From Octopus sinensis (taxonomy: Eukaryota): a DNA stretch of 64,000 nucleotides. Below are positions 13,651-19,564 of the stretch, piece by piece (position 1 is the stretch's first letter; every line of letters begins with the position of its first letter). The notes beneath the pieces were generated by a model. The model ran no database searches, had not been told where the DNA came from, and saw only the letters and a program-made list of their open reading frames with translations. Both the position numbers and the translations under genes were made by a program. The stretch is from positions 558,001-622,000 of the forward strand of contig NW_021829832.1 of the NCBI RefSeq assembly GCF_006345805.1, given 5' to 3'.

Positions 13651-14253
13651 ACTGCAATGTTAAAAATAAACATGAAGTTTCTCTTTATTATTATTATTAT
13701 TTAAAGACCAAACACGGGCAAAGCCAGTTAATTATAGTTATTCCCGTGATCGCCGATCCAAACGAGGGAGATCCTTCTGAAAGGTTCAATCCTTCCCGCA
13801 AGATCGGCCTGAGACGACGATGTCCCAGGGTCTGAGAAGCTAAGAGTCCTTTTTCGGTAGGCATTAAGTGCCTCCTGAGCGTTGCCATATCCGGAGGAAT
13901 TTCCAACTGACATGGTGGACCCCGTAACGCCACGCTAAGCCCGGAAGGTAAGAGATCCCCATTTCCAACTGTGTCGTGCCAGAAGTACTCGTTGCCTCAC
14001 GGGCAGGGGAACGATAACGAGAATTTGCCCCAGGATGAAAACTGGCCTCCTTCGGAGTCGAACTCACGACCGTCCAAATCCATTATCCATAGCCTAGTCT
14101 TCAGCCAAGGGGGCATAGCTTTAATAAGAAACTACAAAGCGAGTATTATTGTGACCGGTTGAATACGAGCCCAGGTTGAATACGAGCCGTTAAACGAGCC
14201 GTCAAAGTGGCGTTATACGAGCCGTTAAATGGCGTGAATGCCGTTAAATCATA

Positions 14254-14524
14254 TTAGGGTTAGGGTCAGGGTTAGGGTTAGGGTTAGGGTCAGGGTTAGG
14301 GTCAGGGTTAGGGTCAGGGTTAGGGTCAGGGTTAGGGTCAGGGTTAGGGTCAGGGTTAGGGTCAGGGTTAGGGTCAGGGTTAGGGTTAGGGTCAGGGTTA
14401 GCGTCAGGGTTAGCGTCAGGGTTAGCGTCAGGGTTAGCGTCAGGGTTAGCGTCAGGGTTAGCGTCAGGGTTAGCGTCAGGGTTAGCGTCAGGTTTAGCGT
14501 CAGGGTCAGGGATTAGGGTTAGGG
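14254..14524 (+). repeat. Interstitial telomere-like array: (TTAGGG-TCAGGG)n followed by (TTAGCG-TCAGGG)n
   Basis: Directly visible hexamer array; it switches to TTAGCG-containing 12-mers at 14398. Confidence 0.97.
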
Positions 14525-14808
14525 TCCTGTTTTCTTTTAGTGTCTTTTTTTATGATGAATATGTTTATAAATAACGTTGAAATCATTTATAGTTAGAGTT
14601 AAAGTTAAGATTAGAGTTAAAGTTGTTACAAACTTGTAATTTGCTAATGTTGCAATTTATAATATCAAAAATAAAAATAATTCACATTATCATTTGCTAA
14701 TGTTGTAAATAATTTTACTATTTTAAAGCAAACATGGTTCAAATATAAAACAATCATTTTCAAAATTTTAAAGTTCAATCATTAATTCGGATGTTTTTGC
14801 ATTTATTG

Positions 14809-17800
14809 AGGTTTATGTTTAATTGTTGTTGGACGGGTTGTTGTGGTGTAATGTCAGTTTTCAAGAGTGAAAATAAGGCAACAATAAAGACAGAAAACGA
14901 GCATTTATCATATGAAAACAAGTTTGGAGGCAACATTACTGTTGTGCTTAAAGTCAATAACCCCTCGATGGGATCTATTAATATTTTTAACACGCTATGC
15001 AACATGAAATCGATCAAGAAGGCACGAGTTTCTCGCCGACAGTCAGGAGAGTTTCTACTGAATTTCAAAGTCGAAAAAGATGTGGAAAACTTTCAAATTG
15101 AATTAGAAGAAAGCAAACCTTTTGGAGAGGGAGGCCACTCTCTCAAAAATAAGAAATTCGGGCCAGTGGCAATAATTCTAAAAAATGTCCCAACTTGGAT
15201 CGAAATTGAGGAACTCGAAGACTTCCTGAAGGGCAAAGTGAAAGGAAAAATGACTCTCGAACGCTTTGAGAAAGGGGAGTGAGACTCCCTATTATTAAAT
15301 TGGTAACTTCTGATCATGGAGAAGCTCAATCGCTTGTACGATTTGGGCTAAAGATTGGCTTTTCGAATGTAAAGGCCGAGTGGTACAGAAAACCGGAAGT
15401 CCAGTGCTATCGATGCCAAGGGTTTGGCCACATAGCACGCTTCTGTAAAAATCAGGAGAAATGTCTATTTTGTTCGGGTACACATGCTGGAACAGATTGC
15501 AAGGACTCTAACATGAAAAAATGTGTCAACTGCGGTTCTTCGAGCCACTTGGCAAATTATCGGGGCTGTGAGAAAGCTAAAGAAGCTTCAAAGCTGAAAA
15601 ATGATAAAATTCTAGTTCAGAAACTGTTAAAAGAAGCTTCGGAGAATGCTAAAATCAACCAAACAGACATAAAAAATTTACCCTTGAAGCCATGGGCGGG
15701 ATGGAACGTTCCAAGAGTTAGGAAAACAGTTGAAGCTGGAACACAGATTGGAAACGACTATATCTCACTCTGCGGTGCAGACTTTGTCGACTTCAGGAGC
15801 TGGGTCAATGACGGGTCGACCTCGAGCTGACTTAATTAGTGAGCTCGAAAGATCTATTAAGGACGTGACCAGAACTAAAAAAGATGCCAAGCTTTTACTC
15901 GGTTTGGTGGCTCTCCTAAAAGAGGGAAGCAGCCACCAAATAAATCAAACGTGACCAGGATTACCCTGGTTAATGCCCGCTCTCTTCGAAAGCGGGCAGC
16001 AGAGCTGATAGCTCTTATCAGCACAGTTCAGATGGATGTATTTATCATTAACGAGACGAAAATGAAGAAGTCTGGAAGTATCACTATTCCTGGATACAGC
16101 TCGATTGATATTCCTTGGCATCCTGGTGCTAACGCCGGCACAGGAACATCAATATTTTACAAAAAGTCTATTGACATTCGGAATCCAAGAATAATTGAAC
16201 AGAATGTATGTGAATTAGCATCCATTGATTTAAAAACTTCTATTGGATGGATAACCGTTGGAGGTATACTCCAAAAGGTTGAAAGATTATTCGTCGATTG
16301 TCAAAAATTTTATGGAAGGAAATGAGAATCCAATTCTTGTTGGAGACTTAAATGCGAAGCATACTGCATATGGGTGCGTGAAGTCAAATCAGGATGGAAA
16401 TTGTTTACTTAAGATCAAAAAAACCTCAAATTTTCAAATTTTAACGTCTGAAGAGCTTAACCACTTTCAGCAGCAAGGTGGTGATCGATTAGGATTGTTT
16501 ATTGTTGCAAATGCCTTAGTGGTTTGTGTGACCGGCCTTATGTTGAAAATGATGTTGGGAGTGACCATCTTCCGCAAACGATGAAACTACGAACGGGAGC
16601 AGTTCTCACTGAGGATGTATTTCTTGGTTATAATATCAGCAACATTAATTGGAATCATTTTAACTTTTATATGTCTATGAAATTTGCAAATACTCAAGAA
16701 TTGAAAATACTAAATCTTGACGAGATCAATTATTTGGATGAAAGAATAAGGAACATTATTCGAAATTATCTGGAGGACTATGGAAAAAAGAGGTTTCTCT
16801 TCTCGTACAAAAATCGATTGATAAATGAAGAGCAATCCAAACTACTTCGTGAAAAAAGGAACTTGGAAAGTAAACTAAAGCGGTGTTGGGACCCGCAAGA
16901 CGCTATCTTCCTCAAACAAAGAATAAAATCGATTAAAAACTTATCAGAGGAATTCTAAGGATATAGTAGAGGAGAGCTGGAAAAAAGAATGCTCTAAACT
17001 CTCTCATAAAAATCCGAATTTTTGGAAACTTTTCTCAAAGATGAGTTCTGATAAAAAGGGTGGAGAGATAAAACTCAAGTCCAGTGATGGCAATCTGATT
17101 CCAAGAGAGGAGGTACCTGAGAAGTTAAAAGAGCAGCTAGCTAAGATTCAAGAAGTGGACCCTTTGTCTATGATTTCTCAGACTATACAAAATGAGACGT
17201 GTATTTGGGAGTTACTATCGCTTACGGAGGGGCCATTATGTGGAGCTATTTCTATGGAAGAAATCAAATCAGCAATACACGGATGTAAAAATAAATCCCC
17301 TGGTTGGGACTACATACCGATGATTATCTTCAAAAAGGCGGGAATGCCTTTGTTATATGAACTATGGAAGCTATTTAACTCTTCGTGGAGTATTGGACAT
17401 GTTCCCCAAGCATGGAAGAGGACAATTGTTCGCATGATCCCGAAGAAAGGAAAACCGAGTTCGGATCCTGCAAATTACAGACCAATCAGCCTCATATGTT
17501 CTATCTCAAAAATCATGGAAAAAATTGTCTTTAAAAGACTATCAACTTATATTGAAGATAAACAGTATCTCTTGAAAGAGCAATGGGGTTTTCGGCGGAA
17601 CAAGGGCACTGGAAATTGCTTTTCACTGTTAAAGGAGGCCATATCTACAGCACAAAGGAAAAAAGAGTATCTTACGGCTGCATGTCTAGACATATCAAAA
17701 GCATTTGATAGCGTCTGGCATGCCGGGCTATTACGAACTTATATACAATTTAGCGTTGGAAAGACAGCCCTAGTTTGGATGAAGAGTTTCCTCTCGGAAA

Positions 17801-18678
17801 GAGAATCGTTTGTACGGGTCGGTAACCAATTATCGAAGAGAATTTTGCTTAAGAGAGGAGTTCCGCAGGGATCTGTCATCAGTCCACTTTTATTTAACTG
17901 TGTGATGTGCGACATCCCTCAAGTGGATCTCCCTAGCATGGAGATGGTCATCTACGCAGATGATATTTTAATTATGGATTTCTCTATGAGCAAGTCAATA
18001 TCGTGGAAAAGAACCCACAGTCATATCGAAAAAATTGGCAAATGGTGCCAGGATAAAGGCTTGTCTTTATCTTTTGAAAAAAGCACTGTTTGCTGGATTG
18101 GTAAAAGGAGAAGGAAACCTGATGTTTGTATTAACACCGGAGCGATAAAACCCGTGGATGATCTTAAATACCTCGGAATAGTTGTGGATGCAACTGGTTC
18201 ATTCAAGATGTATATAAGGAAGAGAAAGAACAAGGCTACCCAAATGTTGAAAGCTCTGATGCGATTCCAGCTGAAACCGGAAACGTTCTTATACGTATAC
18301 TCTGCGTGTATAGAACCCTTCCTGATCTATGGATCTCAAGGATGGTTCGGAAGCTGCGAAGGAAAGAAACATATTGATCTTTTGGAGAAAACGCGGAGAT
18401 ATGCCATTAAACTGGCACATGGCTTGGACTTAAAATCCAAACTAACCCCAGAGCTGGAGGGATCGGTACGATCCATTGAAAAACTGTTGCATCACTTAAA
18501 TAAATAGTGGTGCAAGGGGTCGTTATTTTTATCGAAGGGACATCTGGTGTCCCATTAGAATTGACCCCAATCAGCAAACAAACTTGTTTCTTCCGTCTCC
18601 TTGGTTTCGTTTGGCTCTTCTCTCCCCTTTTAATCTAGTGACGAGTTTGTTACATAGAAAATAAACATTTCAATTCAA
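14809..18678 (+). mobile_element. Non-LTR retrotransposon (Jockey/I/R1-like: gag ORF1 with 3 CCHC knuckles; ORF2 APE+RT, no RNase H), near full length, frameshifted
   Basis: 12-bp TSD TTGCATTTATTG (14797-14808 / 18679-18690). ORF1 CYRCQGFGHIARFC. ORF2 NARSL, GDLNAKH, CLDISKAFDSVWH, GVPQGSVISPLLF, YADD. 3' AATAAA followed by a CAATT-type tail. Confidence 0.93.
15951..18507 (+). pseudogene. LINE ORF2 (apurinic-like endonuclease + reverse transcriptase), frameshifts near 16270 and 16560 and a stop at 16958
   Basis: ORFs 15951-16325, 16258-16584, 16524-16958 and 17041-18507 are successive pieces of one APE-RT protein. Confidence 0.88.
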
Positions 18679-19564
18679 TTGCATTTATTGTAATTGGCCT
18701 TTTGAATCGGTATATTAATTATCGATCTTTTAACGGCTCGTATTCAACCGTATCTCATTATGAACCGGTCACATTATTTAAAGAAATAAAAAACAATTAG
18801 AAATTATACTTTATTTTAATAAAACCATACTTTTTTTTTAAAAAATATTTCCTCATTGTCTTTCGAAATTATTGATTTATTTTTTCAAATTAGACACATC
18901 TCCTTTACCTGAAAAAGTAGTGATAACCCGTTATTCTGCTTCTTGGAGACATCCTGGCAGCGTACCCTAGCGCCATTTCTTCCCTGCGATCAGGAGGAAG
19001 GTTTTGGCCACCTTCTTTTGTGCATTAATTGATAAATTTGCTGTAAAGCATTGCTTGAAGCATTAGGCCACTCATCCTGAGAGCTCTTCCCATTACTTGG
19101 AAAAGAGCGTATTTAACCCAGTCCTCCCAGGTCATGAAATAATTTTATTTTTTTCTGTGAGAGAATCAGAATTACTATTAAAGTAGTTCTCCGTCTCATC
19201 TATTTTTGTAAATTCCTAATTGATTTTCATTAAATAGGTGCAATTGAAAATCTAAAAGCTAATCGCTAGCACGAAATGCTTATAATTAACAATTTCAGTT
19301 TTTTAAAGTAAACTGGATATAGCGTCCACGAGAGAAATTGGAAGACATATGCTAACTAAATTTTGTTTTTTTGTAAAATTCGTATTAAAGATTAAATTCA
19401 AAATTGTGGCCAATTTTTAAATTAGCCAATTTGCGATAGTCACGTTTAATTAAGAAATGACTATTTTTTGATTTATAAGTGTTATTTAATAAGTAAAGTT
19501 TTGGCAGTCTTTATGGCTAGCTTTTTAGAGTGCATAGGATAAAAGAATGTCATTCTGTTAGATT

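Follow-up and report, generated by a model that had tools for sequence, protein, structure and literature searches.

LINEs that probably target a subterminal site of Ginger2-like DNA transposons in Octopus sinensis

The closest described systems are long interspersed nuclear elements (LINEs) that insert into DNA transposons. In Xenopus, Tx1L and Tx2L insert into Tx1D and Tx2D, of which Tx1D is a piggyBac element. In crocodilians, Tx1-Mar is found in Mariner-N4_AMi and Tx1-9_AMi in Harbinger families, and several related Harbinger families are hit about 300 bp from one end (PMC4494074, PMC6719617). All published cases that were found belong to the Tx1 clade (PMC4494074, PMC6719617), as a first-pass annotation of the DNA discussed here had said of the Xenopus pair. 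Most site-specific LINEs with an apurinic/apyrimidinic endonuclease (APE) are assigned in the literature to two clades, Tx1 and R1 (PMC4640811). This text concerns a 64,000-nucleotide stretch of the Octopus sinensis genome (“the window”; positions 558,001 to 622,000 of contig NW_021829832.1, assembly GCF_006345805.1). It holds two LINEs, called LINE1 and LINE2 here, each lying near one end of a DNA transposon with terminal inverted repeats (TIRs). Very probably, both LINEs are members of a single clade of APE-type non-LTR (long terminal repeat) retrotransposons, comprising at least four families, and this clade targets one site 82-133 bp inside the ends of related, non-autonomous TIR elements of Ginger2/TDD-like type.

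As in the Tx1 cases, an APE-type LINE preferentially inserts at a constant point inside non-autonomous DNA transposons of a given family. The mode is the same; what differs is the architecture of the LINE, the superfamily of the host and the sharing of one site by at least four families. Unlike Tx1, LINE1 has a second open reading frame (ORF2) of 877 amino acids that lacks a Cys-His motif at its C-terminus. The APE of LINE1 has a match in PF14529, and among named proteins the closest are called “X-element”. Unlike the piggyBac, mariner and Harbinger hosts of Tx1 elements, the hosts here have TGTNR termini and 5-bp target-site duplications (TSDs). Finally, at least four diverged LINE families occupy, and stack on, one site, which the Tx1 cases do not show.

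The R1 clade (R1, TRAS, SART) offers another comparison. Its members likewise combine an APE with a reverse transcriptase (RT), carry a type I ORF1 with three CCHC knuckles, make precise nicks in multicopy targets and form tandem stacks. Their targets are rDNA, telomeric repeats or microsatellites, whereas those described here are the ends of TIR elements.

In Dictyostelium, the LINEs TRE5 and TRE3 insert at a set distance and in a set orientation from tRNA genes, a repeated feature with variable local sequence, guided by the RNA polymerase III (Pol III) transcription complex. Where the guide is Pol III in that system, a degenerate sequence motif may suffice for LINE1 and LINE2.

Two LINE insertions in the window

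The first insertion, copy 1, lies in a TIR element of a family called fam1, which runs from 14150 (TGTGACCGGTT...) to 18773 (...AACCGGTCACA) and has TGTGA...TCACA ends. Its parts are as follows.

14146-14149, no strand: left TSD copy of the fam1 TIR element, TTAT, read directly; relatives carry 5-bp TSDs
14150-14808, + strand: long arm of fam1, a non-autonomous TIR element, with TGTGACCGGTT at its terminus, subrepeats of the GAATACGAGCC type and an array that resembles telomeric repeats
14797-14808, no strand: 5' copy of the LINE1 TSD, TTGCATTTATTG, exact over 12 bp, read directly
14809-18678, + strand: LINE1, full-length but frameshifted, 3.87 kb, with tail ...TTCAATTCAA
~14850-15954, + strand: ORF1 of this LINE1 copy, with 3 CCHC knuckles
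15879-16584, + strand: APE of this LINE1 copy, frameshifted
16927-18507, + strand: RT of this LINE1 copy, open over 526 amino acids
18679-18690, no strand: 3' copy of the LINE1 TSD, TTGCATTTATTG, whose first base marks the bottom-strand nick
18679-18773, + strand: short arm of fam1, 95 bp, ending ...AACCGGTCACA, read directly
18774-18777, no strand: right TSD copy of the fam1 TIR element, TTAT, read directly

The nick lies 95 bp from the near TIR end, and the end of the TSD lies 83 bp from it. The 3' end of LINE1 (...AAATAAACATTTCAATTCAA) points at this near TIR. Thus the earlier description, a gag-APE-RT LINE with a 12-bp TSD placed 83 bp inside a TTAT-flanked TGT...ACA element and facing the near TIR, can be read directly in the sequence, and the orientation is the same in the second insertion.

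A further element in the window, element C, had been taken to reproduce the sequence on both sides of the insertion point.

30911-31674, + strand: element C, related to the copy-1 host but diverged and free of a LINE, with degenerate termini and without a clean TSD

It is 84% identical to the host over 14630-14795 and has about 13 nt in common with it past the insertion site. Because element C is only a weak relative, the empty site of fam1 was reconstructed by joining both flanks and was searched genome-wide, which gives the stronger evidence. At least 19 other genomic copies align unbroken (positions 1-262, 89-96% identity), while the window copy breaks at the TSD (query position 179). A first look had yielded 123 candidate copies of fam1 in the genome. 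The insertion of LINE1 into a fam1 element is therefore real.

Two side observations concern these elements. The telomere-like array inside fam1 (14256-14526) contains 23 copies of a 12-bp unit, AGGGTTAGGGTC, in which the telomere-like hexamers TTAGGG, TCAGGG and TTAGCG alternate. Immediately after element C, the sequence TATCACGAGCCTTG... at 31678-31700 resembles the terminus of fam5, the host family of the second insertion (TGTCACGAGCCTAGG); it may be a second TIR-element end that abuts element C or is nested with it.

The second insertion, copy 2, has the same anatomy on the opposite strand.

53513-53517 and 58461-58465, no strand: TSD of the fam5 TIR element, TAATA, 5 bp
53518-58460, - strand: fam5 TIR element, built like that of copy 1
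53518-53650, - strand: short arm of fam5, 133 bp, with target TTAAGTATTTG/TCATTTTATAA and palindrome TTTGTCA..TGACAAA
53640-53650 and 57675-57685, no strand: LINE2 TSD, 11 bp, CAAATACTTAA on the + strand
53651-57674, - strand: window copy of LINE2, full-length but frameshifted, with a (TTCG)n tail
57675-58460, - strand: long arm of fam5, ending ...CTAGGCTCGTGACA

Here the nick lies 133 bp from the near TIR end, and the 3' end of LINE2 is again turned toward the near TIR. The TSDs, nick and orientation confirm the view that the other near-complete LINE of this clade shares the architecture of copy 1. With no more than 23-24% identity to LINE1 and LINE2, a further RT (~23400-24500) falls outside their clade, of which these two are the only members in the window. 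It lies in a LINE-like, 622-residue open frame with an RVT_1 domain (21920-24647, - strand).

Preference for the site across the genome

The census covered the 2.7-Gb assembly of 13,516 contigs. LINE1 copies were counted by an exact 25-nt pattern at the 3' end, which gave 30 copies genome-wide. The window copy is 97-100% identical to about 30 genomic copies, and LINE1 is a small, young family. The 3' flanks were read for 25 copies, leaving 22 distinct assessable loci. The 3' junction falls at the following places.

9 of 22 loci: 82-116 bp inside a ...GTGACA/GCGACA/GTCACA end, with TATTA-like flanks beyond
1 of 22 loci: 271 bp inside a TIR element with TSD AATAT
2 of 22 loci: in LINE stacks on GGTATTTGT
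10 of 22 loci: elsewhere or unclassified

The target ends of LINE1 are of the TGTNR...YNACA type. For LINE2, TIR subtermini hold 8 of 13 independent events. Measured against a deliberately generous binomial background of 8 TIR ends per 64 kb, each with a 52-bp zone, the probability of such counts is about 1e-14 for LINE1 and for LINE2 separately. Tabulating the flanks, as had been proposed for revealing an enrichment of TIR subtermini, does reveal one. Use of the target is nevertheless not near-exclusive, since 9-12 of 22 LINE1 loci and 8 of 13 LINE2 events are found there. Sites outside the target include histone 5' untranslated regions (5'UTRs), 18S-like sequence and unique DNA. The targeting is thus a strong preference, accounting for about 40-60% of insertions, and not an exclusive one. 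Two relatives in other assemblies (L087, L088) have 3' flanks that are uninformative.

Occupancy can also be viewed from the side of the hosts. Reconstructed empty sites were searched, and hit coordinates were read for the 40 best-scoring hits of each host family.

famA: 17 intact copies; 14 copies end at query 167-182, as expected from a nick after 166 and a TSD of 1-16 bp
fam5, the copy-2 host: at least 10 intact copies; 5 copies break at 133-135, with the TSD at query 123-133
fam1, the copy-1 host: at least 19 intact copies; the window copy alone is broken

In the fam5 search, the window and contig C9540 show the expected second piece overlapping the first. Copy 2 is a canonical hit, and copy 1 sits in a diverged form of the site that is seldom used.

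Within a host family, the 3' junctions fall at the same nucleotide, while the 5' truncation point, TSD length and tail vary from one insertion to another. For instance, famA is hit at ^GTCGTTGTGATT (the nick is written ^) by LINE2 copies beginning at 1661, 938 (full length), 2101 and 3516 and by a LINE1 copy beginning at 3653. In famB, locus L032 (LINE1 from position 2495, 12-bp TSD CATTATGATTGA) and locus L040 (LINE1 from position 25, 24-bp TSD) have TSDs that start at the same base. Likewise, two LINE1 copies share one nick in fam2 (L031 from position 3474, L038 from position 3078). Independent insertions at one nucleotide of a repeated target are seen in famA, famB, fam2 and fam5. An identical nick combined with differing truncation, TSD and tail indicates independent events.

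This evidence bears on another suggestion of the first-pass annotation, namely that LINE and TIR element form a composite that moves as one unit, a single insertion having been amplified by a transposase acting on the outer TIRs. Composites of one family do occur with different outer 5-bp flanks, such as L056 and L058, and famA is a young and probably active TIR family. However, in each examined pair of composites from one family, the LINEs are unlike in 5' truncation, TSD length or tail length, and the 5' junctions compared (L082, L083, L084, L050, L085 and the window) all differ, which contradicts the suggestion. There is no other LINE1 copy in fam1, and the LINE copies (97-100% identical) are younger than the fam1 and fam5 copies (85-96%). 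Amplification of a composite is very unlikely as an explanation.

It is just as improbable that LINEs insert at random and are retained preferentially in junk transposable elements, or that gene conversion has spread them among TIR copies. Insertions within transposable elements are generally better tolerated, and LINE stacks and repeats are common there. But selection for retention can yield neither nucleotide-identical nicks nor a fixed orientation, and the LINE copies are very young; gene conversion is excluded by the different truncation points.

3' transduction was also considered and rejected: what follows the TIR end is not the same from copy to copy, and hosts without a LINE occur in the genome.

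Stacking is a further property of the site. The 3' TSD copy regenerates the target, so head-to-tail stacks of LINEs are expected. Such stacks are frequent; in L050 and L041, LINE2 is followed by LINE1 at one site. The TIR element at L050 has a perfect 115-bp TIR with the nick at its inner edge, and the same site in its opposite TIR is occupied by a LINE of a third family, tailed with (CCTATT)n. In L043 and L048, GGTATTTGT carries a fourth family, whose tail is AATAAAATCTG(TTCG)n. At least four LINE families thus have the target in common, distinguished by tails of (TTCAA)n, (TTCG)n/(ATTC)n, (CCTATT)n and AATAAAATCTG(TTCG)n.

The near-complete census, the independent events at one nick and the high occupancy in two host families uphold the other suggestion of the first-pass annotation, that of a transposon-parasitising LINE targeting the TIR subterminus. 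That at least four diverged families keep one landing site implies a “safe haven” strategy and a long shared evolution of two classes of transposon. Several features make the system tractable: LINE1 has about 30 young copies, in one of which neither ORF is interrupted, the position of the nick is known to the nucleotide, and the target families are abundant, at least one of them being very young. It offers a natural setting for asking how an APE-type endonuclease or ORF2 protein gains target specificity. The case will interest transposon biologists, although it leaves the paradigm unchanged.

Two local LINE clusters were also observed. In G000:C10250:13505-21274 (L052, L063, L064), 5'-truncated LINE2 copies form a head-to-tail array with a period of about 2.5 kb, joined by (TTCG)n and GGACATACAAATT, an H2B-type target. 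In G000:C8320:51200-62222 (L035/L046), two LINE1 copies are inverted, one inside the other, and a third, 5'-truncated copy lies nearby; the locus is a local LINE1 cluster.

What may be recognised at the target

The proposed mechanism starts from target-primed reverse transcription, by which these LINEs probably integrate. Its hallmarks are present: TSDs of 4-24 bp, truncation of LINE1 at points between 16 and 3653, a 3' end that does not vary and short repeat tails. The bottom strand is nicked at the same nucleotide in independent events, and the second nick falls 1-24 bp downstream, giving the variable TSDs. The ORF2 protein, through its endonuclease or another part, may read a short degenerate motif whose core, TTGTNA, lies 2-15 nt downstream of the nick. 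The commonest form of this motif would be GGTATTTGTCA(A/T)TTTATA, and in 6 of 7 host families the motif adjoins a palindrome. Since the target has a fixed orientation relative to the near end, the 3' end of the LINE always faces the near TIR. Insertions occur at both ends in the host family where the site falls within a 115-bp TIR. Abundant TIR elements might thus provide a harmless landing pad and the main sink for insertions, with motif-like sites elsewhere, such as the 5'UTRs of H2A and H2B, being used less often.

The commonest target, ^N(0-12)GGTATTTGTCA(A/T)TTTATA, is found in fam2, fam3 and fam5. The remaining host families have the following contexts.

famA: ^GTCGTTGTGATTGATTATTAATTTTT
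famB: ^CATTATGATTGATTTTTTAATTTTT
fam1: ^TTGCATTTATTGTAATTGG
fam4: ^GCCGTTAACTACCGG

Of the 23 tabulated sites, 16 have the TTGTNA core 2-15 nt past the nick. The favoured reading of these sites is that the endonuclease or the ORF2 protein recognises a degenerate local motif.

Some observations weigh against it, or against a strict specificity of the LINEs. Four target contexts (GGTATTTGTCAAT; GTCGTTGTGATTGATT/CATTATGATTGATT; TTGCATTTATTGTAATT; GCCGTTAACTACCGG) have only a loose motif in common. The distance from nick to TTGT ranges from 2 to 15 nt, and a simple sequence code is not demonstrated. Fam1, the host of copy 1, is rarely used (1 of about 40 copies). Moreover, about 10 of the 22 LINE1 loci and some LINE2 loci lie outside recognisable TIR elements, so the specificity is partial.

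A different explanation is that position, not sequence, is recognised, with a cruciform or palindrome, or a protein bound to the end (e.g., the transposase), guiding the LINE to about 100 bp from any TGTNR end, whatever the local sequence. The analogue would be the TRE elements of Dictyostelium, which Pol III factors position. The four dissimilar subterminal sequences are indeed all hit 82-133 bp from the end and in one orientation. In 6 of 7 host families, a palindrome able to form a hairpin begins 3-14 nt past the nick, with z between -1.6 and -4.0. In famA the nick lies at the inner edge of the 115-bp TIR, and because identity among famA copies reaches 100%, a transposase may be at work at present. 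On the other hand, the palindrome is absent at fam1 and at the histone sites, as found on checking the 7 host families and those sites. The site in the H2A 5'UTR (TSD CAGAGTATAATGT) and that at H2B have neither TIR nor palindrome and are motif-like all the same. Besides, the host families are related, and a shared position can be mere homology. Guidance by position is on balance unlikely.

A broader form of this idea would make the LINEs a non-Tx1 clade specialised on Ginger2-like ends, reading a feature of the end (palindrome, cruciform or bound transposase) and not a sequence word. This seems rather doubtful. If true, it would explain why four dissimilar sequences are hit at about 100 bp in one orientation, and the insertions in histone 5'UTRs and rDNA would represent a second, related recognition mode.

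The histone sites deserve a description of their own. In tandem histone repeat units, LINE2 3' ends lie 10-75 bp upstream of the start codons of H2A, H2B-like and H3 genes (L086, L054, L057, L060-L062, L065, L066, L072-L074 and L076), representing at least 4-5 independent events. On contig C3805, the tandem histone unit has a period of 5,778 bp, and L086 (G000:C3805:1-10000) has junctions at 5845-5858 and 7503-7515. The LINE2 fragment at H2A on this contig is flanked by a proper TSD of 13 bp, CAGAGTATAATGT, and the ATG of H2A lies within this TSD. The H2A site AGTATAATGTC resembles AGTATTTGTCA, and the H2B site …AAATTTTGTTAAT is also motif-like. Insertions in histone 5'UTRs may matter for the host.

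A chimeric LINE-histone retrocopy made by template switching was rejected for the H2A case, which has a proper 13-bp TSD in genomic DNA. Separately, in L075 (G000:C10696:43057-43307) a copy of an (ATTC)n-tailed LINE2 subfamily abuts sequence that, by eye, looks like a conserved part of 18S rRNA in reverse complement.

The LINE proteins, the host elements and neighbouring features

One genomic LINE1 copy has both ORFs intact, with an ORF1 of 381 and an ORF2 of 877 amino acids. Three CCHC motifs are visible in the sequence of ORF1 itself, CYRCQGFGHIARLC, CLFCSGTHAGTDC and CVNCGSSSHLANYRGC; zf-CCHC reaches 21.5 bits, the cutoff being 20.8, and Pfam detects no RRM on ORF1. It is therefore an ORF1 of type I (CCHC x3). 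Such ORF1s are found in the I, Jockey, R1, Tad1 and L2 clades (PMC4120745), and because the type is spread over five clades it does not settle the clade of LINE1.

ORF2 carries PF03372, PF14529 and RVT_1, that is, an AP-endonuclease and a reverse transcriptase. It stops about 180 amino acids past YADD, with nothing after the RT thumb. RNase H (PF00075), which would mark the I clade, is not found on ORF2, nor is the C-terminal Cys-His motif expected of a Tx1-clade ORF2. Several more distant homologues do carry a C-terminal CxC..H..C. Judged from the predicted domains, the architecture is not Tx1/L1-like. The placement near Jockey, I or R1 and away from Tx1, proposed earlier from the ORF layout, agrees with the domain architecture.

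LINE1 and LINE2 are 35% identical in the APE and 41% identical in the RT of ORF2. The best database homologues reach 25-30% identity and are mostly unnamed; the named ones, called “X-element”, reach 23-25%. In a phmmer search of the APE against the PDB, the endonuclease (EN) chains of R1Bm and TRAS1 remain unmatched even at E<=10. A single-sequence AlphaFold model of the APE has a predicted local distance difference test score (pLDDT) of 32, and a model based on a multiple sequence alignment has a pLDDT of 90. For the latter, Foldseek gives template modelling (TM) scores of 0.70-0.75 to L1-EN and 0.74-0.77 to TRAS1-EN, at 16-18% identity. The predicted model confirms the APE fold, but it is equidistant from L1-EN and TRAS1-EN. 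The similarity to TRAS1-EN is thus no better than that to L1-EN, and the clade is not fixed by it.

The host elements are non-autonomous and 0.6-1.7 kb long. Their TGTNR...YNACA termini are built from two direct subrepeats of about 17 bp and begin with TGTGA (copy 1), TGTCA (copy 2, L031, L050) or TGTCG (L034, L040). Their TSDs are TAATA (copy 2), TATTA/TAATA (L031), AATAT (L034), CATTA (L040) and, with 4 bp, TTAT (copy 1). The hallmarks of Ginger2/TDD are TGTNR termini, a 4-5 bp TSD and AT-rich targets (PMC2836005, PMC10045372), and the TSD of Ginger1 is CCGG or CCGT (PMC2836005). By termini and TSDs only, the host elements fit Ginger2/TDD, with TGTCA, TGTGA and TGTCG starts and AT-rich TSDs of 4-5 bp; they differ in that only non-autonomous copies were seen. 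The label “Ginger-like” from the first-pass annotation can be kept in this narrower sense. Ginger1 is ruled out, because all host-element TSDs are AT-rich and none is CCGG or CCGT. The fetched loci contain no integrase-like transposase and no autonomous TIR copy, a dedicated search for an autonomous copy not having been made. The long element at L050 is packed with LINE fragments.

Many famA copies are 100% identical over 282 bp, for example G000:C12469:129360-129641 and 7 others. Such identity means that this TIR family was very recently active, and a partner element that is autonomous is to be expected.

Among the probable host exons in the window, the one for OSGEP/TsaD is at most 72% identical to any protein in the database, with its best hits scattered over ticks, sea urchins and molluscs, so that the database holds no close sequenced relative. 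Neither Rfam nor a tRNA scan gave a hit in the window. Two transposase-like ORFs in the window are unrelated to the TGTNR elements: a pogo/Tc5-like ORF with DDE_1 and HTH_Tnp_Tc5 (39162-40208, + strand) and a Tc1/mariner-like ORF with DDE_3 (41197-41889, - strand). Probable host exons encode a cysteine-rich domain of a family-3 G protein-coupled receptor (6449-7708), a CUT domain (10901-11626), a protein kinase (43206-43880) and OSGEP/TsaD (45730-46368).

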